Assembly (NCBI GenBank): GCA_965285935.1 | Contig: OZ260661.1 | Coordinates: forward strand, 100,378,001 to 100,442,000 | DNA from: Ophelia neglecta | Lineage: Eukaryota | Reading direction: 5' to 3' | DNA: 64,000 nucleotides | Shown: piece by piece, positions 20,538-50,300 of the stretch | Numbering within the stretch: the first letter of the stretch is position 1 | How the letters are laid out: every line of letters starts with the position of its first letter | Position numbers and translations under genes: made by a program | The notes under the pieces: model-generated | Told to the model about the DNA's origin: nothing | Database searches by the model: none | The model's input: only the letters and a program-made list of their open reading frames with translations

Positions 20538-23500
20538 CTAAACTTTCTCTTGAGAGTCAAACGAAGCCATTGTAATTGCACTCAACTGACTCTCAGTTGG
20601 TATTGCATAAGCTTCAGTGGAGTTGTTTTCTGCAAAATCAATAGAAGGTATGGTGGTCATCTCTTCAGCTTCTTCTCTCAGAGCCTCTGCTTTCTCCTGT
20701 ATCAACACCTACAATACCAATGTAATAGCATAATGTACAGTACCTAGGGATACCTTCTTTATAAACCTCTAAAATCAATTAGAATTCACCAATTTACAAT
20801 ATATAATCACAAATTTATCTCAAACTGAAAATACAAATTTTCAACCTTTCCACATCCTATGATTAATAGGAGATATATACTTGAAATCTTTATCATTATT
20901 GCCAAAAACCAATACTTTATGCCCTTTTTTCAAATGAGTATGTATACAATTCAGTCACAAAGAATCACACATATGCCCAAAAATTACACAAGATGTTCGG
21001 TGGCAGAAAAGATAACTTTCTTTAAGTTTTACCTAAAAATATCTGCCTACCAACCTTAGCAGATGTGACTATTTGTTGTGCTGCCTTCTTTGGCAAGTGT
21101 TCCAAGGATTTGACCAACTTTTCTGGATCAGCATGAGCCACACTCTGAAGGCTTTTGTAACCAGCATTGAACAACTGCCTTGCCCGACCCTAAAGCAAAA
21201 CTAAAGATTAAAGCGGACATGATCATAAATTATTAAACTTGACATGGAATAAACGCTCCTGAAAATTTATTATGGCCCTGAATGTTTGCAGTTTCAGAGC
21301 CTACATTATTTTGTAGCCCTTTTATTTCACATTTTAGAGGTGTTGTACCTATAATTGTTTCCCAATTTGTCCATATTTTGCACACCTTGCAACCCTCCTC
21401 AAGAAAATTGCTAAATAACCCCAACCTTCCCCTCTGCTCAAATTCAGAAGTATGTTACTCCAAACTACCAGTATATGATATTATGCTTGCTTGTAATAGA
21501 CACTTCACACTGGAAATATGAATTATAATTTTCAAATCATAATCAATTTCTTAATCGCTGATGACCTCATTCCTCGGGGGAACCCCCCCCCCCCCCCTTC
21601 CAATTCCATGCCAAACCAACAAATGAACAATATTTTCCACTTCACAGAACTTGTTAAACTTACAATTTTAACCCCAGGAATCTCCATAAGTGGGATCAAT
21701 TCCATTGTCACACAGTAAGACAGCTTCTTTACAAAATTGGCAAACATATCTTGGTAGGCCCAGAATTCTTCGAGCTCCTAAAACAGGTGAAAGGGGGAAA
21801 CTTTCAGTCAGTATTTTTCTTCATATTGTGAACATTAGTGGATTATAATGTTGGTACATGTAGCAAAATCCCCTAATACATACATTTATGTATACATTGA
21901 ATAAAGCCATATACACTGCAATATATTTATCCAATCAGACCTTCTTATTATATTTATCTATATATTCTACTCTATCTATTGAGAACAAAATTATACATTT
22001 CTCCAGGTAAGAAAGTCACTGATAAACACATAATTTGGCAGGATGTAGATGTATGTAGCGGCAATAATAACCTGACAGAAATGAGACACACAGGCTGCAA
22101 ATGAAGCAGCCCCTGCCAGCAGCTGCTGAACAAATCCTCGGGGCAACTGGAATTTAGCTGAAACTTCCCATATGCTTTTTTGTTTCCATAGATTGTAAAT
22201 CACCAAAGTCAGATAGAAACGCTGAACCACATATTCATCTACAGGCTGAAATATAATATGAGGATAATTTAAAAATAATAACTCATCTTCCATCTTACGG
22301 ATAACAATTTCTATTTGCCAATGAAAGTATAGGAACTAGCAAAAATATTGTATACTTAATCCTTGGTGTTATACTAACAAGCTGTACACAAATTGCACAA
22401 TCAATTGTTAGGAGATAAAACAATTCATGGTCACCTTTCTTATTTTCTGACCTGAAGTCTTTTTGGCAATGTAACTCTCTGATACCCCAATGAGGGTTGC
22501 TACTCTTTGCTCAGCTGAATCCATACAGGACATCTGTGAAGGTGCAGCAATATTGAACAGGAAAAACTCGGTGTTATGACATTTCATTCTGACAGAAAAA
22601 ACTCCCGCATTATTTTTAAACTCAAGAGTTAAATATTGGATTGTAACCTGTGTGCCAAGCATGAAACCCTGTACCAACTCTTCAATTGTATACAGGGTAG
22701 GAAATTGGCTTCATTACATATTATTTACTCAATAACAGAGTAAACGTAATGTAATTTCATCTACCAGTGTGCTTAAACAGGCCATTGGCTACTTTTAAAG
22801 GCCTGCTCTAATGCACTGGATCTGGGTTGTAGAAATACCATCTAGTATGACAATTAAGATTGTTGCCTGTATATTTGATAGAAAATTGAGGAGAGCTTTG
22901 AACATAAAACAGAGATTGCATAGCATAACGAAATACATTATCAATGGTAGACAATGATTTAACAGGGCTAAACAATGAATGGTTATAATATACTGTATAG
23001 GAAGTGAAAGAGTTGGCATCATCATGATCATATTAGTCAATGCTCATCCTCCATTTGTTCTATCAAAAAGGTAGGGTGAAAAAAGACGGAGACAGTCGAT
23101 AGTTTACAAAACACTTTAAAATCCTTGTTACGCACCTCATCCAGATAGACCAGCCAGGTTGGTTTGATGTTGACAGCGTGGTCATAGGGGGTGACCAGAT
23201 ATAACAGGTGAAGATGACTGGCCACCACCAGAGACTCTGAGGCCTGGCAGAGGTCTCGGTACAGCATGGAGGCTCGGTCAATGTCAATAGAACCTGCAAC
23301 ACAAACCAATATTAAATAATCACATAAAGCGTTTTTTTAAAAGTTTGCAAGAACTGCCACATAATACTGGTATTTTTGGTATGTGTGTTCCTGTCAAACC
23401 TAGTCAGTTCAAAAAGCAGAGTGCCAGTTGCAGTCTGGTCTATGAAACTGATTGGGATGGAAGTTAGGGAAATAAACAAATTAAATAAGTGCATGAAAAG

Positions 23501-26500
23501 ATAGTATGCAGATCTGAATGCAGTAACACCTTTGAATGTGGCTCTGCCTAGATTGGTTACTTCAAGTAATGGAGGCTCCCCTGCTTTGCCTGGTGGAGTC
23601 GCTGTGACAAGGCCAATGTCCAGGAGATGCTGCACTGAGTTTTTCCCAAGTTCGACCACATCACTGCCCAACTGTGCACTTTGTATATAAAACAAAGTTT
23701 TCTTCAAAAGACCTTCGACAGATTCTGATGAAGGAGTAATCTGAAAGTAATTAGTAGTAGCATTTACACTATTATGAAATGGAAGTAGACTTTTTTAATC
23801 CTAGGTCAACAAATGCATTAAGTCTATAAGTATATCTTTTGACAATCAAGAGTATTTACTTCGCTTAAATCAATAAATAAGGTGTCAGTATCACACGGCA
23901 GATTTGCATTATTGTGTTTTTAGCATTGTTTCAGCCTATTTAAAGTACATGTAGTACCATGTGATAGCTGCCATATTCACAAATGGGACCATACCTTAAG
24001 CCCAATGGTTGTAAGTAGTAAGGATCTCAGTCCTTTGGCTTCTTCAAACAACAGGCTAGACTGGCAGTACTCATATGGTCCACTCACAAGCTCTAAAAGC
24101 TGTATTACAAAATCACAATTAGTTGGTATATTATATCTCAAACCTAATGTTTTCAAACACAAAATACTGAAATGCAAGTATTTAATATTACAGTGAATGA
24201 CAATATCAACAAAACCACTTTTTGCTTAAGCTTTTATCTGAAATTCTAAGAATATTTGTTGTATAGATCTAGGGAACATTGGGATTCGAGTACTACCAGT
24301 AGGCAAACTTTCAGGAAAGTCACTGGTCACAGAGGTTTGCCCACTTAGATCACCCAAAGACAGTTATTTAGGGACAATTACCAGTCAGTCTAACCTGTAA
24401 AATTTTATTAAGTATAAATAGGTCTACCCTAATAATTTGCTCAGTAAAAGCTATTTTTTGCCAGTGAACACTGGCATATTACTGAGCAAGGACTAGTGAA
24501 TATAAAAATTCTTCTGATAGACCGAGTAAGGTATGTTATTCTACAGGTCAAGCCATTTCAGGGTCATATGTAGATTTAACTGCACATCACTACAAGTTGG
24601 AGACAAGAATCAAGGCTCTTACTGTTATGAGTGTTATTCACATTTTTCATACAAACCATAAAAGCTTCCGCACTCTCAACATTTCAAGATGGTGTATACT
24701 ACTTGCCTTCTGTTTGTCTCTCTTCTGTAGTACGAGGATACTTTCACCAGATGTATCAATACCAGCTCGCCCTGCTCTCCCTACCATCTGCTTGTATTGA
24801 CTACTTGACAAGAAACATTGGCCAACATATGGACTTCGTAAAATAACCCTGGATAAATAAACATTAACGGATAGCAGTACTAAATATAATAACTGCAGAA
24901 GTATAATCCTACATTTATACTGATTTTGTATTTGCACAAAGCAGCATCAAAAGAGGTATTTCAATTGGAATATAGTGTTGAAAATGGCATTTAAATTGAT
25001 AGTGTTATATATAGAAAGAAATCAAACAATTTCATATTTCAGAACAATGTACCTCTTTGCAGGAAGATTAACACCAGCTGCCAGAGTTGAAGTACAACAC
25101 AGCACACAGAGTGTGCCCTCAGAGTAAGCCTCCTCAATCAACTTCCTCTCATCCATGGTTAGACCACTGTGGTGATAAGCCACCCCATAGGGTATTGTTC
25201 TTCTTAACACTGGGCAGATCTCACCATTACCGTCATGGTACAAGGCCCGTAGCATGGCTCTTCTTTCATCCTTTTTATGATTAGTCAACTCCCTAGAGAC
25301 AACATTATATAATGTACTTTTTATGGTGTTCATGCCTATATTGTATAGCTTTAAGGATTCAAAGCTGAACAGGGAGATTAGGGAGCAAAAGATATACATG
25401 TATTTATGGGTACAGTTACTCTACTCATATTAAATTCTAACCATTATATTTACTGATCCCTTGGGTTGTTTTTTTGTTTCGCTTTTTTTGGGCGGGGGGG
25501 GGGGGGGGGGGGGGGAGTTGAGTTGAGGAGGGGTATAAAGTATGTAAGGTGCTATTCAAAATAAAAAAATTCAACAACCTGTTTTTAACAACCATTGAAA
25601 ACTGGCTGAGCAACAAAAAAAAACTGAAGAAAGGGGGTCCTATTTCGGATATAAGCTTTCGAACTCTAATAGCCCAAAAAAAAGCAAATTTTGTTCTTAA
25701 TTTTTTCTCTGTAGGATTCATTCATGGAAACAGCTTGACTTTTGGATAATGCCTTTGAAAAGAAACCCATCAAAGTTTAATTACCCTAGAACACCCTGAA
25801 CAAATTTCTACCAGCATGACTAATAGCTCTAGTAATAAGAAGACACCTAGCTATGGTGTGACATTACCTTGCCATTAGTCTACATAACAGCTCTGTCACG
25901 TTTTCACAGTTCTTCTTTGTAGCACAAAACACAAGGCAGGACTTTTCTGGAACCACTTCCAGAACCAGCCCTGCAATCTGGTCAGGGTCTTTCTTCTTCT
26001 CTTCGGCAGAATACTGAAATCAGACAGACAGCTTTAATATTATCATACATATGTTCTTTAAATTATTTTTTTAATAAAAGGAGGTAGAACAATACTGAAG
26101 GGCCATTGTGGCTCTGCCCAAGAATGACAGGTGTCCTCTAAGAAGCCAATAAGTTGGGGGATATTTTGCTCTTTTTGAAGGCCCATGAAGTAGGAGTTAA
26201 TAAACAGATATTGTGGCTACTCAAACAAGCTGCAGGCAATTTTTTTTTTATCATGATAAGTAGCTGAAAAACTGTACATAAACCAACTTAATTTCCCCCT
26301 ATGTTCTGGTGTTGTACCAGGAATACCTCCAGAGCTATAGTGGCAAGTACAGGAGAAGATTAAGCAGGGGAACCTGTATGGATTTTGAGACTACAAGGGT
26401 ATTCAAGAGAGACCTAAACGAGTGGAAGGAGTGTTTTTTTATAATGACGAAAACCATGCCTTTATCTGCTTAATCACCATCCCAAAAACTGGCAATCTGA

Positions 26501-29500
26501 ACTTTCTGAGACAAAGAGAGGGAAAATTACATGTGGAAACTACTTTACATATAGAGAATTTATCTAATGCATTACTTCATAACAGGGAGAAAATATAGTA
26601 AATTTATAAAAATAAAGTCATTAGAACTGTACTCAGCTGAGATAACTCTCCAGGTTTGCAGTTTAAACTTCAACTTGAATTGAACTACAGTTAATTGTAC
26701 CTGAAATGTCGTTATCCTAGAGTGTTTGAGTTTCTCCACTGGACACAGGGCTTTTGGGTCAACTTCATAGACTGTGTCTTCCATTTTTACATGTTCAATT
26801 AATTCAACCTAAAATAGATCACAATACTTATTAAAGGGACAATATCATTCAGCTTTCTATTACTTCGATGACATGTTGTTGTAAGCTGCTTACTTCTTAT
26901 TTTTGTAGCATCAACTGATACAGAAGGAAACAGTTAAAAACCGTTTAGTTTTTACACTAGTGGCCTACACTAACCATAAAAAATTAAACAAACACTGAAA
27001 CAGGAAAGCTTTAACACTGAAGCACTGTCATTGATATTAAAAACAAAACATCATCTTACAGGTCTGAAATCGTTGGAATATACTTCTGCAGATAAAAACT
27101 TCTGCAAATCACTTATGTTGTTCAAAGTGGCACTCATTCCTATAATCTCTGTAGAACCTGGAAAGGAAAATCATCCAAATGAATATCACACAGTACTGAT
27201 GAGAAACTTTATACAGTGTGTATATTCAAAATGATTGCATACATGTATGCAAGATATCTTTAAAACCGAATAAGTTTAGGGTTTATGCCCTCACAAATTC
27301 ACTATACAGAACCTAAAAATATGACTATTCAGTGTCATCATTGGAAAGGGTAACAGATACAGTTGAAGCCAGTATTGACAGCTTTATGATACTGTTAAAC
27401 AGAAAATGTAGACAACTTACTACTTGAATGCATTACTTTGGTTAGAGTCATTTCTAAACATGCTCCACGACTTCCTCCCTCACCAAGCATGTGAAGCTGC
27501 AAGCACAGCCAAAATGTGGTTCTCCAGTATAAATAGTGACACTTTATTATCAGTACAATGCACTAGCTGTTTGCAAAATGGGCAAAAATTCAGCATTCAA
27601 GGGATGCAAAATAATTCAACATTTGAGGATATTTGGGAGGGGTCAGATATGAGGGGGGAGGGATCAGAATTCCCTCCCCCCCTTCACCTTTATTCAAATG
27701 GACTAGCCCTAAACTTTTCTGATTAATCAAATCTAAAGGGACCAAGAAATACATATATTCTTACCTCATCAACCACAACCAGTCCTATCTCTTCCAATCT
27801 GCCAGTTTCAATCAGACTATTGACTAACGAATTAGCTTTTTCAATGGTACAGATATACAGGGACTTCCTCTTTCTCCTCTTCCGGGGAGGAAACTGGCCT
27901 TTGCTGGCAGCATATTCCTCAACTAAGAAGTCTAGATCCAACGCAAATGCACTTATTCCTCTAACCTTTGGTATTAAAAGATTTAGTTAATGATTACAGC
28001 ATTTTGATAGGCATTTAACTGTAAACAAAATCCTAATTAATGGAATAAGAGTTGCAGCACTTTTTTGACACTTCTGGATTTTTACCAACCTTTTCTTGAA
28101 CAATTGACACAAATGGTAGAATTAATATTGCATCTCTCTTTTTCAGGAGGAGTTCCCTAAAAATAAGGATTTCAGCAACCAGTGTTTTTCCTCCACTGGT
28201 AGGCAATGAGTATATGAGGTTCTTCTCAGATCTAATGGCTTCCATTGAAAGACACTCCTTTTGCCAGTCTACAAAAGCAATATGATTTTGTGTTCTGTAT
28301 CCCATAGAAAGACAATTACCAAAACGAAAAGTCTGTCACAAAACAGATAGATACATACATGTATATATATTGTGATCCAAAAAAGCATTGACCAAAATCA
28401 CCATAAATGTATAATTCAAAATGTGGGATGATTTTACCAAACCCAAGCACAAACACTATTGAGATTCCCTTTCATATTTACCATAGAGATTTGTGATCCC
28501 TTTGACCTTCTCCAGTAAATCTTTAACCTTGGATGGAAGGCCAAAAAAGGGTCCAACATCATATTTAGTTCCTTCATGTTGCAATTCTGCTGCTTCCAGC
28601 ATGGCAATCTCCAGACTCTCTCGCCTCATTTCTTGAAGCTTAGTACTCTGCACAGTGGCAACTTTGGCATTTTTATGAAGCGTTTTCTTAATTTTGTCCC
28701 TGAATGAGTTTTTTGGCACTGTTGCTGCTTGTACTGATTTCAACACAGATTCTTTAACACTGATTGATGTACCTTGATCACCGAGGCGCTGAGCATGACT
28801 AGATAGGGTCACCGAGGTGTCACATTGTAAATGTTCCTTTTCAATTTTATCAATGTCAATGTTAGCAAACAAAGGGTCAGTGTCATTGAAGCTCTCATGC
28901 TGTGATAAAAAATAATCTGGTTCCTCTAACAAATTGTTTGAAAATAAATCATCACTAGATGAATATAATTCATTTGCTGTGCCATGTTGCCCTTTATGCA
29001 ATAGTTTAGCCGGGTCACATGGATTAGTTTCGCAAATAGCTCCAGCAACATCTTCCTTTGAAATCTGATCACGTTTGGGCATGAAAAGACTCTCACTGCT
29101 AGCTGAAGTATTTTGTGGACATTGTTTGGACATGAAAGAATTGTCTATCCATATCTGTTCATCTGAAAGTTGATCTGGTTTTGAGGCCACTGAAAATGGA
29201 ATGACAATATTCAGTATAACCATAAGAGTTGTTCAATTGTCAACACATTCGGTAGCTACCATACTTGGAAATATGCTCCCTCCCCTGCAAATTCTGTTTC
29301 GGTTACAATACCCCATACATGTTCACACTTTAAGGCTTTAAGTTTATGCTATATTCTATCAAATATAACATTACTGACTAAATACTAAATACCCCCTCCC
29401 CCCACCCTTCCTTAGGGACATTTATTTAAAATAGCAATGAGTTTATGGGTTTAAAACAATTAAAAACATAAAATCATGTTTAACATATCAAATAGTAAAT

Positions 29501-29651
29501 TACTTAAACCCTCCTTACCCTTGAGGTTGATTCCATTGTTTGTAGAACTTTTGAATCTTTTAGGCGTCTTCGTGCATTTTTCTAATAGTCGCTTTCTTCC
29601 ACTTGCAACTCTCCTAGTAATTTCAACACTATTTTCTAATTCAGATGCCAT
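20538..29651 (-). CDS. HELQ: HELQ (helicase POLQ-like), multi-exon
   Basis: ATG at 29651 (MASELENS); [10 protein letters not shown]; Walker [20 protein letters not shown]; DE|LH box; IIGMSATL; [22 protein letters not shown]; motif [23 protein letters not shown]; HLLYLVTP; [12 protein letters not shown]|GRARQL. Last exon 20538-20708 ([15 protein letters not shown]...*). No polymerase domain, so not POLQ. Confidence 0.96.
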
Positions 29652-30865
29652 ATTTACAATTATGAGAACCTAGAAAACACAGAAATCAATACTTGATTGC
29701 GATATTGAAACCATTAGTGCATTTTATAGGAGATATAGGAGTTGAAAAATATTAGAATTTATATATTTTTCCAAAATATCTGAAGTGACATTACTGGCAC
29801 AGTCCTTATATAAAGCAAGAAACACAAATCGATTCAAAAGAGCCTCACAGGCAAGTCAAGAGACAATAAACTTAGTATCATGTATACATATATATGTACA
29901 ATATGTATTTAGCAGGTACAAACTGGGTAGAAAGAGGAGAGATTTCTCTATGAAAAGGGTACAGAAAGGTAGTAAATGCAACAAAGATACATTAGGAAAG
30001 AATGTAACAGTAGGAATGCAATCTGGGACGATTATGTCCCAGTCAACTTGCCCTGATTTTTAGTCCCAGCTAAATCTAAGTTGGTGAGCCCAAATTCGGT
30101 TTTGCTTTCTGAGAGGGATGTTCAAGTACAAGTTTCGCAAGGCGCTCAGAATTTGTTGCATATGGTCCATCTTCAGGCTTTTAAAAAAGTTTTAAAAGTT
30201 GACGCTTCATATTGTGAGGAGTGTAAAATCTTATCCTGCAAGGGGTGGAGGTTCGTCTAATTCAAGAGTCGCTGGTTTACACCCACAATCAGATCTGAGG
30301 TGGGGAGGAGGGAGAGTTGATGGGGGAGGGGGGATGGGGGGAGGGTGGTGGTGAGTGGTGGGTGGGTGGGGGGTCGGATGGGGCTCGAAAAGAGGTATGA
30401 CTGAAGAGGTTTGGAGCTACTATTGAATAGATCAGGAGGTTTGGGATTAATAAATGACCCTTGTTGTAGTTATCCAGTTGAAAGCTAAATTAAAAGTAAT
30501 CAATTTATCCTTAACTGTATCACGAAATATGAGAAATCAAAAAATTGTTATTTCCTTACACCAGCATGATTTCAAAATTCATGTAAACACTTATAAATGA
30601 TGCGCTCTGCGAGTTGCTTTTTGAAACTGCTTAAAGTACCTGCGAGAATAAGGAAAGGGATCAGCACTTTCGGTTTTATATTGAAATGGTTGATCAGTAT
30701 TAATAACAATAGATAATAACCAATATAGGGTAATTCACATAAGGTATACTGTGAATATGTATAGTTCATTTTAATTTAGTTTTTAAATGTCAACGGATAG
30801 TATGAAACAAATCTTCAAAATTCATTATAATTCATCAATAACTAAGTTGTCCCTGGCTAACAAGT
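29652..30865. promoter_or_regulatory. HELQ 5' intron/UTR and candidate bidirectional promoter shared with the PNK-MRI-like gene
   Basis: A minus-strand acceptor at 29670-29671 just upstream of the HELQ ATG and a candidate donor at ~30639 imply a non-coding first exon ending ~225 bp from the next ATG (30866). Confidence 0.5.
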
Positions 30866-33800
30866 ATGGCGGAAAGGGGACCTGGAGGTTCCGAAGTCGT
30901 CATTTTTTATGGCCCTCCCTGCATCGTAAGTTAATGCCACAGCAAATAGTTGTTTGCTGTTGTAGGAGAAACACATTTTGACCAAAAAGAAAGTATAATG
31001 TAATAAGTGTTTGACTTTTTTCATCGTTTAACTACCTATATGGCACGTTATGAATGGGCGATATTTGGTAGAGTCGACGTTTACTACATTGCATTTGAAT
31101 GTCAGACGACTCGGCACCTGGAAAACTCGGCCCCTATTTAACTCTGCCAACTCGGCCCCAGACACAGGACGACACGGCGTCTGCCTCAGGACGACTCGGT
31201 ACCTGGAGCCTGGTCAACTCGGGACCTAGATTACCTGCATGGGCCTTACTCGAATTGATGTGTCAGAAGCTGGCACTATAAGAATATCTTTTCTGGTATA
31301 CTGAAATCGAATTAAACCACACTTTTTTAAGCTGCACCATGACCAGTCTGCAGGACGACTGTGCACCCACCCATGTTTTTCAACTTGACGTTTGACAGAC
31401 ATGTGTTGAAAATGACTCTTTTGCAATATCAGAGGCTTGCAGAATTTGTTCAACTCATTCGCTTCAACTTTATTTTATCAACCCATCAACCAAATAACGT
31501 GTTCACAAATAGTAGGTTAGGATTCCTAGTATAGATAGTTTCAGTTCATAAATATTAGGTTAAGATAGTTTCAGTTCATAAATGTTAGGTTAGGATTCCT
31601 TGTATAGATTGTTTCAGTCTGGTAATCAAGCGAGTTATGGTTCCCTGTTAGGGTAGGGTGGTATTATAAGATAATTAGAGGCAGGCACCTAGAAGTCTGC
31701 ATTTGGTCAAACTAATGGTTCAGGTTCTATAGTCCTATGGCCCATTGGTCCTACGACCCATTGGTCCTACGGCCCATTGGTCCTACGGCCCATTGGTCCT
31801 ACGGCCCATTGGTCCTACGGCCCATTGGTCCTACGGCCCATTGGACCTACGGCCCATTGGTACTACGGCCCATTGGTACTACGGCACATCCTATAGCTTT
31901 TGAAAATTGGGGAAACCGGGAGAATGTTTGCTATTTTAAAGGTCATGTAATGTTACATATCTGTGAAATCCTGTGTTAAGGACGGTAATGGTAACTTACA
32001 TGTAACTTACTGGAAGACGAATATCATGTCTTGTTTATCTGTCCCAATTATTATAACCTGCGTAATTGACTCTAGGGAATATTGGGTTGTATCGCGTTGT
32101 AGGGTTATATCGTACTTTTTTTGTCTCTCCGACCAGCCGCGCTCCTTTTGGGAAACCCCTGACAATTTCGTTACGTCTCGGTAGAATTCGATCGGGATGT
32201 GCAAATAAACGTTATTTCCGGTATGTTTGGCGCGAAACCTGGCTGTCGGAGGGCGTGATGAGTTATCTTAAAATTTGCTCCTATTTGCTGGGTAAAAACT
32301 GTAATTCCTGCCATGTGGGAGAAATCATCCATTCCATAAACAATCAAAGGCCTTGCTAATTCCTCTTTATTCAATGAAATATTTCGTTATTCGTTACAAT
32401 TTCTTAATGTGTAATATCTTATTCGAACGGCATGAGTATCAACAATGGCCGACATAGTTTGACAGAAATATTCGGGTTGTATCGCGCCGAGGGTAGCCTT
32501 GAATCGTTACGGTTGTTCAGAACGTGATATAAGGCTACCCTCATTATTGCATTGTTATTATATAGAACCGGGACAGGACGGGGGCGGGACTGATATTTGG
32601 TCCTTGCAGGGCTCTCCGCTCTACCGTAGTCCACAGCTCCACGGAAGGGAAAAGAAGAGGGGACCCCCTCTACAGCTCCAGTGACGAGAGAAGAAGGGAT
32701 CCCCTCTACTGCTCCAGTGACGAGAGAAGAAGAGGGGACCTCCTCTACAGCTCCAGTGACAGAGGGAGAAGAGAGGAACACCAAAGAGAATATGACAAAA
32801 TGTGACATTTGTTCAAAGTGGGCCTATAATGAATGCGCTGGCCTAGGCGGCAATACATCAAATTATATTTGTAATTGTGACTTTTGCCAAAATTAGATTT
32901 TGAAAGCGTTCTCATTGGGGGGGGGGGGGGGGAAATATAGAATCTAGCCTGTATAATTACTGTCGTTGGACCTTTGAATTTTTAGTTAGGGACATGAGGA
33001 AATTTACATCGGAACTTTTGACGTTGTTCCTGATATCGTTAATGTTGACATCAGCACAGCTCAGTTGGCTGTATATTCGTGACTTAACTTTTGCAATCCG
33101 GCGATTTCCAACCTTAGATATTGTCACTTTGCCAAACTTCGATAATTATTAGTTTGGCTTTTATTGCATTTTAATGTTGAATTTCGTATAATAAAATATA
33201 ATAGCGATACCGTGGGCTATAGGCCTATATGTCATTCATTTTTAAATCTTATTCTATAAGCATAGGCCTATGCCATTCTTTTTAGAATGTTAATTGCCAA
33301 TCCTAGATTATTATTTACCACTCCACTTTAATTGCCAGAAGTGAAGCTCTGAATACTGAGTTCCAGCTGCTGATACAATACCCTTTTGTTCAGGCCAACG
33401 AAACCTATAATGTCTTTAATTCTTCAACATCAGAATGCCTAAGTAGGCCTAATAATTTGAATTAAAAGAGATCTACTATGCCCGAATGGGCCCCCTGATC
33501 AATAATAATGGCCTTATATCGTAACATATTTTCGGCTTATATCATCTTTTGTGGCCTTATATTGCGGCATGATGCTAGGCTGTCTCAAAAGCGGTATTAC
33601 CCTGCCTAGCACGATAATAGACAGCGTTTTTCAGGTAGGTACAAAACGTGTTCCCGCCCTGCGCATGAGCTCCCTAGCTTGGCGGATTTTCTCAGGAAGG
33701 CTTTGAAAGTCCATGCTTCTTAATGCGAATTAGTTTAATTGTTGGTCATTATTTCGATTTAATTGGTCATTTATTACTATAATTTTGTTTTAATAATAAC

Positions 33801-36800
33801 TGGTTTTATTTATTTATTTATTATTATTATTATTATTTTTATTAATGACCATTTCTGTTTAAGTTCCTCAGCACGGTCAACAATTTTAACGCTGATTTGG
33901 TTTATTATATGGTGTACTAATCACCAGCACGCAGTTATGTTTTTTCATCATTAATCTGCAGGGTGTTATCTCACACTCAGAGACTAATTTCATCTACATT
34001 GTTCAACAGAATGTAAACATTTGTAAAACAACAGTTAGTACGTAGATCTGAATCAAAAGAGATAGGCTATAGAGCGCTGACTGTCCTCAGCAGTCATGTG
34101 TCACGTAGTTATTGAGCAATGTCGGGTTATTTTACGCAGCAGTGCGCGAAATTTCCCGACTTTACCCTATATATACCAATAGGTATAGAAGTAGGACCAA
34201 TGGGTCGTAGGACCATGGGCTGTAGGCCCAATGGGTCGTAGGACCCGGGCCCGAGATAATAGGACCAATGGGCCGTATGACTAATGGTCCGTAGGACCAA
34301 TGGGTCTTAGGACCAATGGGCTGTAGGACTATCGACCAGGCCCCAAACTAATGACCAATTTAAATTGATATCTTTTTCATAACAGTCAATGTAAGAAAGT
34401 GTTAATGAAGGGCAAACAGGAGGCTTAGAATTTGGCACTTTATTGAATAGCCATAAATCGGCAAAAATTTTAGTTGGAGTTGTGCGTCATGCCTATAGGA
34501 ATCAACATCATGCTTTACACACTGTTGTATCTAAACAATTTCCGAATGAAAGTTTCAGGTTGCCCAGGAATCTGGGCGTTATTAATGTGAAGACCTAGGT
34601 TTTGTTTGTGAGTTCAAAGGACAGTAGTGCACCGTCTTAATTGGATATAGCCAGACTAGCGCCAGACTGAACACTCCTCCTGCTGGTGACCGCTAATCTC
34701 ACATGGCGATCCCCCCCCCCCATGTTAAGTAAATGCACACCAAGGCGATGCCGCTCTATTCATTTTATTTCGATTGCTGCCTTTCTGAATCTTTTACCAA
34801 ACCTGTACAAACCTATATAATATACAAACCTAGCAAAAATAATCAGCTTTATAGCTTAATATAGCACTGAGAGTTGAATTGTATCTGCTACAATACATAT
34901 GTAAATGTCAATAGGTATATTATTACTTTGAAAGTAGGCTTGGATGTCAGCTCTAAAGTCGTCCATTTTCACATTCCTTTAATCTTCTGTGTGAGATTTA
35001 ATGCTGGACTATTGGCTTTGTTTATATACTCGTGGGCAAGGTTAATTTAAATTTGTTAAACATTCAGAAATTGGTGTCTTGGCAACAAATACCAGGTACA
35101 TATTTAGTTCTACCACAATAGTTTCCTGCTGAATATACAGACAAGCATAATTTTTGCTGTTTTATTGCTCATTTAACCCATTCAATTCATTCGTGTGCTG
35201 AGAGAATTGTTATACAAGTCTGTGGAAAATGAATTTATGAGATATATATATATATATGTTACATTTCTTTTTTGCAGGGAAAGACTCATTTCTATCATGA
35301 AAAACTCGCAGGAACGCATCGTAGAATATCTCCATGTGAATTGTGGTCAAAAGACCCCAACATTACTATAAGACAAATAATCAATAGATATGTCGTGACA
35401 GGTTTAAAAGAGGTAAGTTTTATTTGGTTATGAGGAAGTGTTCTTTGTTGTTCAGCTTGACATTTTTTATGGTCAAAATGCTTCCATTGTTCCACTGAAT
35501 GCACTGTCCATCTGGCATATGGTCATCTGAAAGTTATAGTATAAAAGCGGGCACTAAGGCAAAAGACTGGCAGGAGGTCGTCGCCAGCATCTGAAAGTTA
35601 AAGTTCAGCTCCTGGTACATTAAGGATTTTTATGCCTGATTTGTTTAACCAAATACTTAATTTGGGAAATTTAATTTGCATTGCATGCATGGAAGATATT
35701 TCCCAAACGGAGAAAAATACTTCTTTACGAAAGGCAAAATTAATTAGGGGAGAGGGCTCGAACCAGAGGGGTGGGGGTGGGGGGGGGGGGGCGGTTTGCT
35801 CTACCAATGTTTACAGGGTGGAAAGAGTGGAGTTGGGGTGGTTTTTATTTAGATTTGCCCAATGTCAAAATTATATTTGTTTCCATTATATAGGCTGGAA
35901 ATATTGTTCTTGATGACAGATTTGAATCTAGCAAGACCAGGCAATCATATCTAAGTCTCATCGGTGCAAAGGTAATTATTTATTTTGTCAAGAAACTATC
36001 CTTTTTCATTTCTATTTAAATATTATGTTACCTTATATCATTACTGTATAAATATCATGTTACCATACCCCTGCTTTCACCCATAACTTGACACATCCCC
36101 CAGTCTACTGTCTACAGTACCCGTAGTTCTCATTTCCAATAAATTGCATGCATTATAATATATATCTTGATTATCATGTCATTATATTATAAATGTTATA
36201 ATCTTCATGTATACTATACTGCTCCAAATGTACATTTAATTTAACAGTTCAAAATTTCAGGTACCTGAAGCAAGCTTTAAATGTCTCAAGTTTCAACCCC
36301 TTTATGGCCAGTGGCAGCTAAATTTAGCAAGGGAATATTCTATTGCTCATAGTGTTCTGATTGGAAAACCAAAAGCCATTCAATCTATTGATGAATGGTT
36401 TGCCATAGAAGGTACAGTATACATGATGATAGATTATATATGTTTCTTTTAAGTACTATCTTCTTTCCGACTTAATATTTGTATTGGTGACATGATAATC
36501 AACTACAGGGTTTCGCCAAAAATAAATGGTAAAAGACTTGTACATTATGGGTTCAAATTTTCATTTGTGGCTCAAGAATGGCCAAAACTAGGTCAGATCT
36601 GTAGCTACTAGCTAATGTCACAGATGATACATGTGATTGCTTGTGGTCAATGCTTGGAATGACCTGTGAGTGGGTACATATGTATTTACAAATTAATCTC
36701 TGTTTGGCACCTGGTTGGTTACTTGGTATCCGTTTAAGTGTAACCGTATATTGTAAGTGGAGTTTATCATTTTTATGAGTTTTGTTTACAATATAAGAGT

Positions 36801-39800
36801 TCTAAATGCATAATCATTAAATACAAACTAGGGAATCCTGAATCAGTATAAATATACATGATCAGTGATTCATTTAGATATTTGGAGGTATTAGGCACTT
36901 GTGAAAATTTACTAGGTCCTCTGTGTAGTTTTAAGGCCCTCATGTTGAAATTTAGTGAGCCATGGGACAGTGCAGGAGTGCATCAATGTAATCTTGAGTG
37001 CAATTCCTTTTAGAAAATTGCGAGTCAAAGGACTTGGAACAGAGGTTGAATGAATCACTGCATGATGTATATGTTGTTTTACCAGTTATTGATTTAGTCC
37101 TGAATGTGAGTTTACTTTTTAGAGCCACCATCTGAAGATGAAGGTTTTGGGATTGAAATAATTACTAGGGGTCTGAAGCTTTATTCTGCATACTTGGTAA
37201 GCTGTCTTTATTACAATACAGGCATTAGCGATTACCTGCGCTTGAAAACTAGGGACATTGTGGGCATGAAATACGCATGGGCCCATGATCATCAAGAATG
37301 ACAAAATTCTACAACAAATAGGTGTTTCATTATTTGGGTTCCTTCAAAAAGTTTCAATTATTCAATTCAGAAGGAGGTTTTGCTCATGTCATTTTCTCTA
37401 CTTCATGGTGCAAAATAAATGGCTTGGTCAATATGCATCTTTCTGGCTTACCTTCAGTGGGTAGAATTAAGGAAAATATAATTACCTGATCGGAAACAAT
37501 TTTATCAAATTCAAACGAATGTTTCTTATTATATGGCCTTTGAGCTAATGTGGAGATTCATTGCCCATCCTTCCCTCTCTTTATATATCCATCATAGTCT
37601 ATATTATGCACCTTTAGCCATATAGGTTCACTGTTTCCCATCTAAATTACTTATTTGTTACTGGTGACGACCTCCAGCCAGTCTATTGCCTTAGTGCCCA
37701 TCTTATTACTACTACTTATTTGTTATGATTAGGAACTATGGCCTGGCAACAGACCTGTCATAGAATCTTAACCTCTTGATCAATAAAGCAAACCAGCTGA
37801 AGCCTGAATGATCAGTTCAAGTTTTACCCTCCAACCTTGGTTATGACTTTTGGCCAGGTCCGCTTGGGGTTTTTAATCTCGCTGTATATTTAGGCAGATA
37901 TCCTAGGGAAATATATCGTTTATATTTGAGGTCAGATAAAATATTGTTTATTGACCATTTTTATGAGGGCAGACAATTTTTCAATTTTTAAGTAGACTAA
38001 AGAAATGCTCAATGCATAGTTATTGGTAAATACATGATCTATTAATATTAGCAAGATCAGTAAGATGTTTATGGCTTCGTCCCTCATACCTATGTACCTG
38101 TGCTTCCAAAGGCTTGGACTTTATTCAGGTCCACAAAAATGTGCCCCTTTAGCGGCTTTGACCTGAATACAGCTCCAGCAAGTGCCCTACATAGGGAACA
38201 TTCAAATGTCCACCAATAAATAAATGTTAGTAATTATGTACCTGACTCTGACTAGTCAAGCAAGTGATCCTCAAGTCGATTATAGGCTTTCTACTGGAAT
38301 ATTACTTGTTTCTTTTCATTGAGTTGGTTAAAAACTGTGTTTAGTGGAATGCAGGCTAATTTGTTAAAACTATAGGGGCATGGAAGACTTAGCAAATAAG
38401 CCTGCCATTAAGGGCTACTAGCTAACTAGGAAGGGGCTGGTGAGCGGGTTAATTAAGTCAATGAGAGAGCTTTAAAGATTAAATTGTTGGAGGAACTTGC
38501 ATTATTAATGCATTTTTTTTTTCAGTTGGAAAACCCTGCTCTCATTATCCAGTGGGAAGGCATGGTCAAATATTCTGATGGTACAGCTGACATAGTATCT
38601 GGAGTACACAAGACAATTTCTACATGGTATTCTGCTAACCCGTGTGGCCGAGTCATTATTGTACTTGACCCATCGTCCACCTCAGGAGGTTCGTTTCAAT
38701 TCAATTTGTAGTCAGATCTGTTGAATAATAATTAAATTTATTCCTTGTAATTTGTGTCTCTCAAAGTTTGATACCAACTGTTAAAACATTTTACTATTAA
38801 CAGTAAACTGAAAGTTTCCTTTCAGTAATGCTTTTTAGTGGATTCAAGCAAATTAAATCCCTTGAAACCGTTTGCACAAATTGTGCTTGTGTGTCATGCA
38901 AATTTCCATAAGAAAAGTGTTTGTATATATATTTTTTAATGGCAATTTTAGTCACTGGAGCTGAAAGAGAGGCACAAATGAAGTACATTTTGTTTGAATT
39001 AGTCAAAGAGGTATGTGACATCACCTGATATTTGTACGTCTCTTTTACCTGCCCGTTTGTGCATAGGGTTTCACCTTTGAAACTTGGGGCATAAGAAAAG
39101 TTTGAAACCATGCAAGTGAATAAATAATAAGGCTATCCCATATTAGGTGTCGGACTGCCCAGTATTTGCTGTAGCAATTGAGGAGGCTGGAGAAAAGTTC
39201 AGCAGGCCTCCCAATCCAGGTGTCTTGGCTTTCCTGGAAACTCTGCATTGTCTTGACTTTCGCTTTATGGTTGGTTTATTTTTTGTTATTAAACATTAAA
39301 ACATGTTTGGCATTTTCTTAACCCCTTCACATCACACATAGGATTAACTTATAGACTGGTAGCTCTACCTGAGACTGTACAAATGGCCGCCATGGACATT
39401 TCATGCATGAGTAATATGATTCTCATTCAAACTCTTCCAGGGCTCATTGATGTTATACCACAGCCCGCCTTTCATGAAAATGGCAGAACAAATGGGACTT
39501 AGGTACATGAAAGCTGGCAAAGCATTTGCAAATCCAAACTTGGTTAGTCCATTGTGTTATTGAGAGAGGATTTTGATATAATCTTTTTAAATTTTATGAA
39601 TCTAATAAAGCACTTTACTACCCGATAGTAATTTACATGTAGCTGTTTGACTTTTTGTTTGTTTTTGTGTAGATACTGATATCTCATGCTCACACAGTGC
39701 CTCTAGTTCCCGAGGTTCACAAAACCATGGAAATTTTGTCAGATTCGCTGTCTGCTGAGTATCAGCCATTAGTACCTTTAGTACATATGGCCAAGGCAAA

Positions 39801-42539
39801 AGCACATGTATACTACTCACAAAACCTGGATGGGGGCAGACTTCTCTATGTGTGTGCAAAAGAAAAAAGTGTACTTGAAAGGTGGGTTTCTTTTCTATGT
39901 ATTGAAAAGTATTAATTTACTGAATGGCATTTTTCTGTGGATTTAAAGTTCTTTATTGGCAAGATTTATCCATAATACTATTGGAAACAGATGGAGTTTT
40001 ACCTGATCAAAAACTATAAAAAGGAAAGCATTTAATTCTTTCAAAGTGTGTATTTCTGGATTTTCTTTTAGGTATACTGACCTTTACCAGAACCATGCCA
40101 CTTTGGTATCAAGTGGAAACTCTAGTCAAATCAGGGCTATGTCTAAACTAGTGACTCAGCAATTATCTTCACTCAGAAAGACTCCCCCAATAAAAAAACA
40201 AAAATCAGTTAGCCGTGGGTTACCAAAATGGATGTCAGAGAAATCTAATCCAACAAAGAAGAAAACTGAGTTGAAGAAGATACCACTTCAGTTGTTAACT
40301 CTGGATTCCTCTTCAATTGAAACTGAATCACCTGCAAAAAGGTGATTTTACAATTGTTATTATCTACTGCCATTTTATACTATACATCTGTAAGATGAAT
40401 GCCATTCACAAACCTATTCTCTTGAAGGTAAAATAGTTCATACATGTATCGTCTGTATATCATTTATTTGTCAGAAGAAAGAAAGGTAAAGATAAAGCAA
40501 AGACAGTGAGAAGTGTTGACTATATGTTAGATGAGCAAGAACTGCTGGAAGCTGCTAAGAAAATATGGCAACAAGTGAGTAGTAAGGTGCCTCACATATG
40601 AGTCCAACTTTTAATGCTCTGTTCCTTTAATATTAATTCCAAAAAGAAAGTATATTTAGTAATTCCAGAATCAACAGGCTATAATAAAACTAATTTGGTT
40701 AAACACATAAATGTTGTAGATCTAACTTAGAAACTTATAAAGGTTGTATAAAAAATTCCCTGTTGTGAAAACTGGTCTACTTGTTTTGCAAGGGAGCTAT
40801 CACTGCCAGTACATAGTGTATCCGTATAAACTTTAGGCAGGCAGACAGCTACCAAGTGAGGCTGAAATAGAACAGAGACAAGCAAGACCGTCTGCTAGTT
40901 TAAGGACCCTGCCTATAGAAAGCACATCTGCTGGAGAAACAAGGTTGATATTTCAATGCCTTTTTATTAATAAGCCTAATGATTATTAAATATTTACATG
41001 ATAATTAAAGAACCATGAGATTTTTATTGGTACAATCTTGTCGACTACTTTGCAGTCAACAAGCCCCGAGAAAGGACAAAAAAGCAGAAGCCTCCAAGAA
41101 AACTGTTCCAGTGGGCAAATCCACAGAATCTGACAGTTCCTCAGACTCGGAAGTATTACAGGATTTATTGAAATTCTCCAGCAAGAGTCGTCAGTCTAGG
41201 TAAACACATGATTAGATTTTGAAGAAAGATACTGTAGGTATTAACCAACTTTGTCCAAGGAAAATTACAAGCATTATGTGCAAATAAATTGTGCCTATGT
41301 TATTTACTATTCCCTTGTATTTTTTTTTCCAGTTAAACATATTTTAAAATTACAGCAAATCAATTGTGTTACTTTATTTGCAGATCAAGTCCATTGTCAC
41401 CAGACCCAGCCAAACCCAGGAAGATCACAGCTGTAGAGAAATCTGCAGGAGACGGTTGGGACATATTAGATATGTTTGTACCTAATACTTCATCCAATCC
41501 TTCGTCCTCTGGAAAATCCCAGAAGTCACAAAGCTCAAGGACCACCCAAATGGATAGTTATGTTTCTGAAACTGACTCTCAGAGGTCAAGTATCGGAAAA
41601 ATCAAAAGGTCACCTGCACAAAGCAGATTGGCAATGACCCACTCCCCAGATGACACAGTTATTATTGATAGTTTCTTTGATAGTTTTCATAATACTGACC
41701 AAACGTCAAAAAAAGCCAAAACTATCAACTTTGCAGTTCCACAACTACCTCCAGTGTCAAGGAATTCAAGTCACTCTAGCAAATTAAGTAAGTCATCAGT
41801 ATCAAGAGTGAGTGATAGCATAGTGTCAGAAACAAATAGCTCTAGTAAATCTATTCTAAGTCATAGAGCTGTCTCTTCTCCCACTTCACAAGTAGCTGAC
41901 AGCTTTGTGCCAGAAAGTAGTTCATCAACAGGAAGAAGGCTGTCTAATAGATCCGGTTTGTCTGTGAGAACAGTGCCCGACAGCTTGGTACTAGAATCAA
42001 AGTCCTCTAGGGGTACTCTGAGTTCAAGTAAGTCTGGTGGATCTCGGAGGACTATTCAAGACAGCTTAGTTCTGGGCACTAGTAGTGCATCAATTAAGGC
42101 AGGTAGCTCTGGTAAATCATATGGATCCAGACATTCAATAGCTGATAGCTATGTTCCTGATACCGATAGTTTAACTAGTATAAGGTCTCCCGTATCTGTT
42201 GGATCGAAGACATCTATATCAGATAGTATAGTGTCAAAAACAGGAAGTGACTTCTCTGGTCCTAAAAACCCATGCTCTTCTCCACAGAATAAGTATGTTA
42301 CAGATAGTTTAGTCCGTAATACAGGATCATCTCAACATTCAAACCAAAGGAAATCTCCCAGAAACTCTGGCCCTAGTGAAATTTCTGATGGACTGGTGCC
42401 AAATACTCCATCCTCTGGTCATCAGGCCTCAACAGTTTTGTCCAGCAGCTCTTCAAAGAAAAAGTCAATCCAAGATCACAGTGACTCACCTCCTAGTCCT
42501 GAACCGGACCAAGCACTGTTAGACTTGTTTAGATTGTGA
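30866..42539 (+). CDS. Uncharacterised ~976-aa protein: PNK-like P-loop kinase + degenerate HAD phosphatase + Ku-binding/MRI(CYREN)-like motifs + Ser-rich repeat tail; 15 exons
   Basis: GT-AG exons 30866-30925, 35278-35412, 35894-35971, 36261-36411, 37123-37196, 38526-38688, 38952-39010, 39147-39269, 39441-39542, 39673-39881, 40072-40341, 40475-40574, 40837-40943, 41056-41199 and 41384-42539 sum to 2931 nt in frame. Motifs: EVVIFYGPPCI|GKT, NIVLDDRFESSKTRQSY, EPPSEDEGF, ENPALIIQWEGMV, SRPPNPGV, RGLPKWM, YMLDEQELLEAAKKI. Confidence 0.82.
31099..31260. mobile_element. MITE/transposon end fragment with short actcggc repeats
   Basis: Several actcggc(a/c)cc units in ~160 bp, typical of subterminal repeats of non-autonomous DNA transposons. 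Confidence 0.45.
31718..34344. mobile_element. Mutator/Foldback-like element with subterminal 17-bp tandem arrays
   Basis: Left array (ggcccattggtcctac)n at ~31739-31885; inverted array (gtaggaccaatgggcc)n at ~34191-34328; flanking direct repeat (c)aaactaatg at 31708-31717 and 34344-34353 (9-10-bp TSD). Confidence 0.8.
32620..32896 (+). pseudogene. Transposase C-terminal remnant (short 33-36-bp repeats + PHD-finger half), probably from a nested pogo/Tigger-like element at ~31908-34167
   Basis: KCDICSKWAYNECAGL...YICNCDFC* resembles the terminal PHD of DDE_1 transposases. Weak inverted ends ggggaaaccggg (~31908) and cccgactttaccc-TA (~34167). Confidence 0.5.
36863..37060. mobile_element. MITE with 12-bp TIRs and 6-bp TSD
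   Basis: catgat|cagtgattcatt...aatgaatcactg|catgat. Confidence 0.75.
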
Positions 42540-47383: not shown

Positions 47384-50300
47384 TCAGTATGACGGGGATG
47401 ATGAAGGTTCAAAGTCCATTTCCTCAACTTTATTTTGTTGTACAACTTTCTTAGCCCTTGTGTGTCGCTTTGGTCTCTTGTCATTCTTAGGTTTATGAGA
47501 CTTGGTTTTCTTCCTTGCGCCTCCAACGGCTGCATCCCCTGCCTCGGAGTCCACACTGCTACTTCTAGACTGGTGCTCTACAGAGTTAGAGTGAATCAAC
47601 TCAGATTTAGCTGAATGCACCAGATCATGAAAAGAGTCTAGATCTCGCTTAATTTCTTTTGTATCCCGTTGTGCTGAAGGTAGCTCTGAAGTATTTGGAG
47701 CACTGATGTTTAAAGCATGTGTGGGCCTTAGAACCTGTCCTTGATTTTGTACATTCCTGACTCTATCTACCGGGTCTTCCATTGAAGACTCAGAGGAGTT
47801 TAAACTTGATATGGAGTCATTAGAAGACACTTTGGCTAGCTGCTCAACAGTTCCTGGGAACTTCAGAGGCTTCCACTCTGGTGTATCTTTTTCCTCTTTG
47901 ACGCGGTCTTCAACCTCATCATCAAGGACAATCAAATCTAGTTGTTCGTGCTCTGGCTCCGGTAGCTCATGTCGTAAAGGGGACTTTTGGTGATAGGTGG
48001 TCTTTCTTGGTAATAAAGGTGAACTACTCTGTGTAGGCACAGGGATAGGGCCAGTCAACACTAACCTACGAGCAGTGGCACTTTCTACAGGAAAGTTTAC
48101 ATGGTTATCAGGAGGAACTTCAAATTCTGGAGAAACTGCAAAAAAAGAAGGAATTGCCAATAAAAACTGTGTTTTTCTAAAATAAAATTAGGATATATTT
48201 TTTTTTATTTCTCATAAAATGTATTTAAACACAAACAGAGCCAGAATTAAGTGATAAATCTGCACAAAACAAGTCACATGTCATCACCTGGGAAATTTTT
48301 TATTTTTAAATATATGAAAATGAACTCAAGACTCTAATCACAGGTGGTTCAAAATACATGTATGTAAAATGAAAGTATGATTGAACATTACAACACCTAC
48401 ATGTATTAAAATAAAACAAGGCTGGATTCCACCCCCGGAATCACTTGTGCAGAATTTCTATTGAAAAGATTTCCCACCCTACCAGTCACCTTAGTTTCTA
48501 GGTACATGTTTTAATTTCCATTGGTATAATTAATGGGCATGTCTAATGAGGAAAAATGTCCTGTGGTTGGATGGAGTCCCTTCATCGAAGGGTCCCTTTA
48601 TCGCAGGGAGCATTGTACCACAATTCAAGCTGGACGTCTACTACTGAAAGAAGGTCTACTGCATTTATGTAGTCAAAAGTTAAAGTGTGCAAGGGATAAC
48701 TGAGGCCCTTTATTTTAGTCGAAAGTTAAAACTTTGGGGTGAGGAGGATTCTGAATTCAATGGTGGGGGACACCTTTTTAGAATTGGAAAGGCCTAAAAT
48801 TTATAATTATAATCATAAATATTAACCATTCATATGTGGATAATTGACTTCTGGCATAGCCAATGCATTGCTCCTAGTTTCGAGGTCATCTACTTCTTTC
48901 ATCAGCTTCGCCCGGTAGGTTTCTGTTTCTGCCACTTGCTCGCACAGCCCCTAAAGAGATATTTAAGTAAAACTAGAAATGTTAATTTCAACAATGAAAC
49001 AATGTCAAATACCAGTATACAAATTTCAATAGCTTATATGTTTAGAACTTGTGTCACTTTTCTGTAAAAAAATAAATAACTTTACCATTAATTGTTGATG
49101 GAGTACTTCATTTAAGTTCTGGAAGCTAACCACTGACTGAAGCTTGCCTCTTGCGTCCAACATTTCTGAGCTGACAACAATATAACATTAAATTATTTTT
49201 TGGTTATTCAAATATGATCCTATTTGATAGTTCTACAGCAATGGTTTTTCAAGTTGAACACACTGCTATGTTGGAATTCTGTAAATACAGTGGTTGGCTA
49301 AAGTTTTGTTCCATTTAAAGGTTTCTTTGGCATTTGATTAAATCTTTAATATAATATAAACTATTATTCCTTTCAGAGTGCTAGACAGACATATCTTATT
49401 TGAATAGGTACAGAGCATACATTCTAAATCCATCACTGCCTATTAGAATATAGTATACATGTATATCAATTAAATGTTAAGGATGTAAAAATCTTTTGCG
49501 GGGTGATCACCTACCTAAAGTTCTGTACAGTCTTGTTGAAGATTCCAGTATTAGGATTGACAGTTTTACTGCCATGAGCTCTGTACTCCGACTGGGATTG
49601 GGCAGTGTCCCCTAAATTCTCAACTTGAACTGGTAATCCTTGGAATGTTCTATAAACAGTCAGCAGTTTAAATCCTTTAACTAGACAAAGTTTTCTTTAC
49701 TTATTAAGTTGATCTTATTAAGATTTTTTCACTTGTTTTGGTAACTTTCAACTATATCAGGTGTTTCTTACCTGCCATTATTGATGAAAAATGTGTGATC
49801 AAATGAATGGATTCCATGGTTTTGAGCAGTGTTAGATGTGCACAGACAAAACAGAAAATTATTCATGTTAAGTCCAGGGAAACACTCCTTAAGATGCCTA
49901 TGAATGGCTCTCTCTCGCATTGACATTATAAAACTGGAGTTTCTTCTGAACTTGTACCATCCAACAACCTCCTACAATTAAATTAAGACAATCAGCTTAT
50001 AAGATTAATTTTTATGTCATTTTAAGTATCACTTTGTTCTTACATCATACATTAGCACCAATTACTATGAATTTTTAAGGTTACGCACTCGGTGTTGACC
50101 ATTTGTGCCTTTGACTGTCTGAAACAAATCCATCAATCTCTCTTGATCAACCCTACCACTGCTGTTATACCAATTGAACAGTCCAATACAGGGGACAAAA
50201 GAATAGACATCTGGAAAGACAAAAGTATTGATTTCTGATAAAAACACATATCTTAACCAGCTTAGCTTATACTTACATAGATAATTTGTGATATTTGTGG

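Follow-up and report, generated by a model that had tools for sequence, protein, structure and literature searches.

Could an invertebrate gene encode a protein which carries a nucleotide-binding domain to Ku-bound DNA ends? The question is raised by a 15-exon gene in Ophelia neglecta (NCBI GenBank assembly GCA_965285935.1, contig OZ260661.1, positions 100,378,001 to 100,442,000 of the forward strand). This stretch of 64,000 nucleotides is referred to here as the window, and all positions are counted from its first letter. The gene lies at 30866-42539 on the + strand and would encode a protein of 976 residues. The reading we favour, with confidence that stays a little short of even, is a Ku-tethered protein made of two halves: a P-loop head and a disordered tail with a Ku-binding motif (KBM). 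The head corresponds to residues 1 to ~420 (exons 1-11) and looks globular, and the tail comprises residues ~420-976. The original prediction had gone further and proposed a candidate NHEJ (non-homologous end joining) factor, in which a kinase and a HAD-IIIA-shaped domain in the order of T4 Pnkp are fused to an adaptor resembling CYREN/MRI.

The gene model

The exons were re-derived from the raw sequence and checked by script. Together they span 2931 nt (976 codons and a TGA stop), which agrees with the frame originally proposed; the short motifs quoted for it are likewise all present on the + strand at the places given. All 14 introns are of the GT-AG type, the acceptor tracts are pyrimidine-rich throughout and the exon phases are compatible. 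The start ATG has A at -3 and G at +4, with an in-frame stop 24 nt upstream. At the other end, the last exon lies within a 400-codon open frame and an AATAAA is found 1.4 kb past the stop codon. The window as a whole contains spliceosomal introns, has 36-40% G+C and a CpG observed/expected ratio of 0.37, and is free of N runs. Judged from the sequence, the gene is very probably real. Its features are as follows; residue numbers of the protein are arithmetic on exon lengths.

Exon 1, 30866-30925, + strand: start codon, hydrophobic strand EVVIFY and first half of the Walker A motif (GPPCI); donor ATC|gtaagt
Exon 2, 35278-35412, + strand: 45 codons beginning with GKT; acceptor tttcttttttgcag, donor GAG|gtaagt
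Exon 3, 35894-35971, + strand: IVLDD (Walker-B-like) at 35903 and TRQSY at 35936
Exon 4, 36261-36411, + strand: QWQLNLAREY segment with a possible lid arginine; its 3′ end is in phase 1
Exon 5, 37123-37196, + strand: (E)PPSEDEGF at 37122; end of the proposed kinase-like part (about residues 1-166)
Exon 6, 38526-38688, + strand: ENPALIIQWEGMV at 38529, GVHKTI at 38601 and GRVIIV(LDP) at 38646; proposed HAD motif I/II region
Exon 7, 38952-39010, + strand: 59 nt, required for frame restoration between exons 6 and 8
Exon 8, 39147-39269, + strand: SRPPNPGV at 39201; its 3′ boundary is less certain than any other junction
Exon 9, 39441-39542, + strand: MAEQMGLRY at 39480
Exon 10, 39673-39881, + strand: 69 codons, globular-looking, matchless in the searches made
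Exon 11, 40072-40341, + strand: a pair of predicted helices, followed by a basic, disordered stretch with the putative Ku-binding motif
Putative Ku-binding motif RGLPKWM, APLF-type, 40214-40234, + strand: about residues 433-439, preceded by KKQKSVS
Exon 12, 40475-40574, + strand: VDYMLDEQELLEAAKKIWQQ, helix-like by eye, after a run of basic residues
Exon 13, 40837-40943, + strand: confirmed on the sequence by script
Exon 14, 41056-41199, + strand: Ser-rich basic/acidic stretch with EVLQDLLKF
Exon 15, 41384-42539, + strand: 384 codons and the stop, 27% Ser, predicted to be disordered
Array of 11 motifs D-[SGM]-h-[VF]-x-x-[TSF], 41469-42407, + strand: from a pattern scan and shuffles
C-terminal amphipathic helix PDQALLDLFRL, 42504-42536, + strand: end of the protein, predicted by AlphaFold

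Intron 1 has features of its own. A 16-nt tandem repeat (9.9 copies, 31732-31889) and a similar repeat in the opposite orientation (34127-34300) lie 2.3 kb apart in it, and between them are a 39-nt repeat (32633-32777) and a Cys-rich open reading frame (ORF). Together, these elements probably represent a transposon inside the intron.

The putative Ku-binding motif

The core of the Ku-binding motif is R-x-x-P-x-W preceded by a basic patch (PMC4831024). In exon 11, SRGLPKWM follows such a patch within a coil which holds KKQKSVSRGLPKWMSE; core and patch together read KKQKSVSRGLPKWM. Across the window's 93,445 six-frame residues, the extended pattern [KR].[ILVM]P.W[ML] matches only once; in per-exon shuffles, it turns up in 0.065% (P = 6.5e-4). 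Furthermore, the residue after the Trp is Met, which is the high-affinity form: in MRI, Met at this place binds Ku80 ~30-fold better than Leu, and most MRI orthologues carry it (bioRxiv 10.64898/2026.07.22.740027). All searches and fold predictions for the 976-residue protein were made on single exons or exon pieces. Modelled in this way, exon 11 forms two helices (exon residues 2-34) with a predicted local distance difference test score (pLDDT) of 72-83, followed by coil before the motif.

RGLPKWM is a statistically unusual and convincing putative Ku-binding motif, and at the level of sequence it supports this element of the original prediction. The arrangement of a basic patch and then R-x-L-P-x-W-M in a disordered region is shared with APLF and with the other carriers of the APLF-type motif (A-KBM), WRN and MRI. 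APLF is also similar in being a scaffold-type protein with other modules attached; its FHA domain, PBZ zinc fingers and acidic histone-chaperone tail are missing from the 976-residue protein. To our knowledge, the carriers of an APLF-type motif are all scaffolds (APLF, MRI) or a Ku-stimulated enzyme (WRN), and we know of no KBM protein with a P-loop domain.

The P-loop head

An intact Walker A motif, EVVIFYGPPCI|GKT, is located at the extreme N-terminus, where GxxxxGKT follows a hydrophobic strand. GPPCI|GKT is created only by the splice between exons 1 and 2 (phase 0). The required AG|GGN-AAR-ACN occurs at a single site in the 4.35-kb intron 1, and an open exon of 45 codons ending in GAG|gtaagt follows directly. 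About 50 residues past the P-loop, a second hydrophobic strand ends in DD, with an Arg 8 residues further on, and EEPPSEDEGF lies near residue 150. NLAREY offers a candidate lid Arg by eye, without a reliable alignment.

From these motifs, we consider the head to be probably a P-loop NTPase, and it most likely binds nucleotide. A PNK-like kinase fold is a more balanced matter, with even chances on either side. The likeness to PNKP and T4 Pnkp was seen by eye only: it comprises the Walker A motif, the hhhhD(D/N) strand with an Arg ~10 residues later and an E-x-P-x-x-EGF ending a unit of ~160 residues, after which a HAD-IIIA-like pattern follows in the T4 order. In contrast to these enzymes, no exon gives a profile or pairwise match, the HAD catalytic residues are gone, the Arg-Asp of the kinase acceptor site is not evident and an FHA domain is absent. 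The assignment of the head to PNK and HAD is an unconfirmed resemblance in motifs.

The HAD-like part

Over ~150 residues after the kinase-like part, the exons show an alternation of hydrophobic strands reminiscent of HAD-IIIA. The original prediction read a HAD-IIIA-shaped domain here, as part of an end-binding or end-healing module. The nucleophile Asp of HAD enzymes is indispensable. At the position of motif I, QWEGM (38550-38564) is found in place of DxDGT. The positions proposed for motifs II-IV read LDP, SRPP and YHSPP, so that the Ser/Thr, the Lys and the acidic pair are replaced as well. Exons 6-9 gave no match to a HAD profile of Pfam or NCBIfam, whereas pieces of T4 Pnkp reach 26-60 bits. 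As the catalytic residues are all replaced, an active phosphatase is excluded, and with it end healing by such an activity; a HAD fold, if present, would be dead. That the head has a HAD-like fold at all appears doubtful from these data.

A separate likeness concerns exon 8. At 39186-39230, AGEKFSRPPNPGVLA resembles the Dcp1-binding PNRC2 peptide AGAKFSEPPSPSVLP (PDB 5kq1 chain C), with 11 of 15 positions identical. The match is not significant (E = 0.42) and overlaps the stretch proposed as HAD motif III.

The disordered tail

AlphaFold models exon 15 with a mean pLDDT of 43.8. Two helices stand out from this disorder, the short GWDILDMF and, at the end, QALLDLFRL (exon residues 374-383), where the last two 10-residue blocks (371-384) reach means of 79 and 86. 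The third residue from the C-terminus is a Phe which lies in this confident helix; the residues before it are acidic (EPDQALLDLF) and a KKK run is located 22 residues upstream. XLF-like motifs are defined by a basic patch adjoining a conserved Phe (PMC4831024). As a candidate XLF-like motif, the terminal amphipathic helix, predicted with confidence, carries the L-F of these motifs and lacks the basic patch next to the Phe. Three related amphipathic motifs occur in the tail, EVLQDLLKF (41154-41180), WDILDMF (41463-41483) and ALLDLFRL (42516-42536), two of which are predicted to be helical.

Exon 15 also contains an array in which D-[SGM]-h-[VF]-x-x-[TSF] recurs 11 times, its consensus being S..S...[IV].DS[L]V[P][E]T.SS. 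Spacing is 26-28 residues among the last eight (41814-42407), and the first three are 28, 38 and 49 apart. Shuffled sequences gave a mean of 0.026 copies and a maximum of 2, compared with the 11 observed. No tandem repeat was found at the DNA level under the array, which indicates that the spacers have drifted apart and the repeat cores were retained. The most economical reading of the array, from its sequence, would be a multivalent docking platform dependent on phosphorylation.

Known motif classes were compared with the D-S-h-V repeats by eye. An LC3-interacting region lacks its hydrophobic residue at +3, the LxxIxE of PP2A-B56 is misfitted in spacing and the DSGxxS of beta-TrCP would need a Gly that is absent. 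Calcineurin LxVP and the clathrin box were rejected too, and no more than ~3 of the 11 copies would suit a SUMO-interaction motif.

A model for the protein and its genomic context

How could these parts act together? In the favoured reading of a Ku-tethered protein, RGLPKWM would dock on the vWA domain of Ku80. The docked motif would bring the head, nucleotide-binding and reduced in enzymatic function, to DNA ends occupied by Ku, and the repeat array could serve as a multivalent, probably phosphorylation-controlled docking platform. The analysis itself shows the gene model, the presence and rarity of the motifs, the disorder and the neighbourhood; we infer the fold of the head, the binding of Ku and any role in end joining.

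The gene next door bears on this role. A HELQ/POLQ-like helicase gene lies on the minus strand (20500-29700), with exons matching Pfam DEAD, Helicase_C, POLQ_helical and HHH_5. Further on, it shows no polymerase domain, which makes HELQ more likely than POLQ. Its first exon (MASELENS...) stands head to head with the 15-exon gene, with 1214 bp between the two ATGs:

Spacer, 29652-30865: 1214 bp, flanked by the ATGs of the 15-exon gene and of the divergent HELQ-like gene (minus strand), presumed shared promoter region

A HELQ-like neighbour fits a role in DNA repair, and a function in genome maintenance gains modest support if, as presumed, the promoter is shared with this repair helicase.

A fuller version of this proposal can be formulated, which we regard as distinctly unlikely. 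It would describe a new invertebrate class of Ku adaptors with a PNK-fold head and a dead HAD domain, an A-KBM tether to Ku80, an 11-fold phospho-regulated array and a promoter shared with HELQ, possibly kin to the parent stock of CYREN. If the Ku-tethered reading is true, the P-loop head would represent a type of cargo not seen before at Ku-bound DNA ends. Such a protein would likewise illustrate how, outside vertebrates, accessory factors of end joining are put together from short motifs. A kinase-like and a dead phosphatase-like domain, paired as pseudo-enzymes for the binding of DNA ends, would merit attention in their own right, and the evenly spaced D-S-h-V repeats point to a partner.

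Points against the model

Several observations weigh against the favoured reading. First, the gene model was built from genomic sequence alone, and the junction between exons 8 and 9 is its only weak one, where 15 GT..AG pairs leave the frame open. The exon 8 donor ATG|gttggt at 39269 is the best partner for the sole good acceptor (39441); an alternative donor at 39221 gives a protein 16 residues shorter.

Second, the searches with the head were blank. Exon by exon, Pfam and NCBIfam (E ≤ 10) returned no match to AAA_33, PNK3P, HAD_PNKP, KTI12, MRI or any other family. Among the six exons searched against PDB chains, exons 2, 4, 6, 10 and 11 were matchless and exon 8 had one non-significant match. 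A hidden Markov model of the T4-Pnkp family, built from T4 Pnkp and 116 listed relatives (117 sequences), scored the exons below zero and gave no signal on any six-frame segment. Comparison of the exons with this family by hhalign was no better than with reversed sequences and showed no colinearity. As controls, pieces of T4 Pnkp of exon size match Pfam AAA_33 at 23 and 19 bits and its HAD_PNKP model at 26-60 bits, and the 55-130 residues of neighbouring exons suffice for Pfam to find domains of HELQ and SDE2. Because exon-sized pieces of T4 Pnkp are detected, short queries alone do not explain the blank searches, and the divergence is real. A sequence relationship to T4 Pnkp found no support in these exon-by-exon searches; of the proposed PNK kinase head, the Walker A motif is intact. 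In a by-eye alignment, the position of the kinase catalytic Arg-Asp reads Pro-Cys-Glu (ISPCEL), where Glu41 could substitute.

Third, no orthologue of any part of the protein was found in collections which seemingly lack the lineage. The last exon had no match among representative proteins of the whole library, its own gene included, and the absence of the gene itself is what suggests that the collections are without this lineage. The exon piece with the Ku motif found no homologue in protein collections, candidates of 62-196 residues included, and no relatives of the locus were found in viral, prokaryotic-genome and metagenome collections. In the literature, no described protein with a P-loop head and a Ku-motif tail was found, in keeping with the original remark that no named gene with this architecture was recognized. 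Lastly, the R-x-x-P-x-W core is frequent by chance and occurs in more than 600 human proteins (PMC4831024).

Alternative explanations

The alternative which survives best is a real gene unconnected with end joining. The head would be an orphan or KTI12/PSTK-like P-loop domain, the HAD likeness would have been read into the sequence and the Ku motif would be a chance match. In KTI12/PSTK-type kinases, a P-loop at the extreme N-terminus is presumably followed by hhhDD-x-F...R..Y. We take the motif pattern of the head, with its IVLDDRF...R..Y, to fit these kinases about as well as those of the PNKP type. The blank profile searches despite a positive control speak for this explanation, as do the chance frequency of the KBM core (PMC4831024) and the fact that exon 8 resembles the peptide of the decapping activator PNRC2 as closely as anything found. 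On the other side, the extended Ku motif with its basic patch is rare in shuffles, the HELQ neighbour suggests a shared promoter and the terminal L-F helix is present. KTI12/PSTK proteins differ, moreover, in that Pfam KTI12 gave no match and the C-terminal part is unrelated. On balance, we hold a gene outside NHEJ to be somewhat less likely than the Ku-tethered reading.

The Ku-tethered reading also presupposes a single gene. Exons 1-10, enzyme-like, and exons 11-15, encoding a separate disordered protein, might instead be two genes or have been joined wrongly. Reading through intron 10 leads to a stop after 10 codons, and exon 11 contains an in-frame Met which could suit such a split. Against it, the exon 10/11 splice is canonical and in phase (AAG|gtgggt ... 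ttttcttttag), the whole chain is an exact multiple of three, and no stop-ending exon, polyadenylation signal or ATG-initiated first exon was found between the two parts. We give this explanation little credence.

Could the protein be a long ancestral form of CYREN/MRI, as had been suggested? MRI1 is composed of an A-KBM, a short structured segment ~40-50 residues further on and a C-terminal motif (bioRxiv 10.64898/2026.07.22.740027). The same order is seen here, with a segment that is helix-like by eye and a C-terminal motif containing a Phe, and the Met after the Trp is that of most MRI orthologues. In contrast, MRI has ~157 residues, its KBM is N-terminal and it has no enzyme-like domain, whereas the present protein has its KBM around residue 433 of 976. 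From the helix to the C-terminus there are ~470 residues, compared with ~70, and the tail motif is without the adjoining basic patch. Neither the Pfam MRI model on exons 11-15 nor the homologue search with the KBM exon revealed any sequence similarity to CYREN/MRI, and no small homologue came up. Short linear motifs, furthermore, arise convergently. Such an ancestry is very improbable, and the original suggestion found no backing in these searches.

An active T4-type Pnkp, that is a 5′ kinase and a 3′ phosphatase healing DNA ends and fused to a Ku tether, deserves hardly any credence: the Walker A motif is intact and kinase-like motifs precede HAD-like ones in the T4 order, but the HAD nucleophile and acid are missing, motifs II-IV are replaced and the 117-sequence profile is silent on every exon and six-frame segment, so that the T4-type phosphatase, judged on its residues, is close to refuted. 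Equally remote is a non-functional locus, whether a decayed pseudogene or open frames strung together by chance, for which the lack of homologues could be cited, against a 400-codon open frame at 37% G+C, 14 canonical introns with compatible phases and a Walker A motif and repeat cores which, maintained without DNA-level repeats, indicate selection on the protein.

Other features of the window

Beyond the HELQ-like gene lies an SDE2 gene (5876-9793, minus strand). Its C-terminal SAP-type domain matches SDE2_2C at 1e-29, an exon with the SDE2 domain is present and a ubiquitin-like exon ending in LPGGKGG was recognized by eye. A Rfam search of the window gave no match.

Downstream of the 15-exon gene, a Ser-/Lys-rich frame of 258 residues (47384-48160, minus strand) without a Pfam match is possibly an exon of the next gene. 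Near the start of the window, an ORF of 176 residues (225-755, + strand) looks by eye like the N-terminal part of a Crypton/DIRS-type tyrosine recombinase; it had no Pfam match and no homologue in the protein collection. Lastly, positions 2124-3413 are occupied by 13.4 tandem copies of a 96-nt unit (95% identity), which produce a spurious ORF of 305 residues with meaningless Pfam matches.

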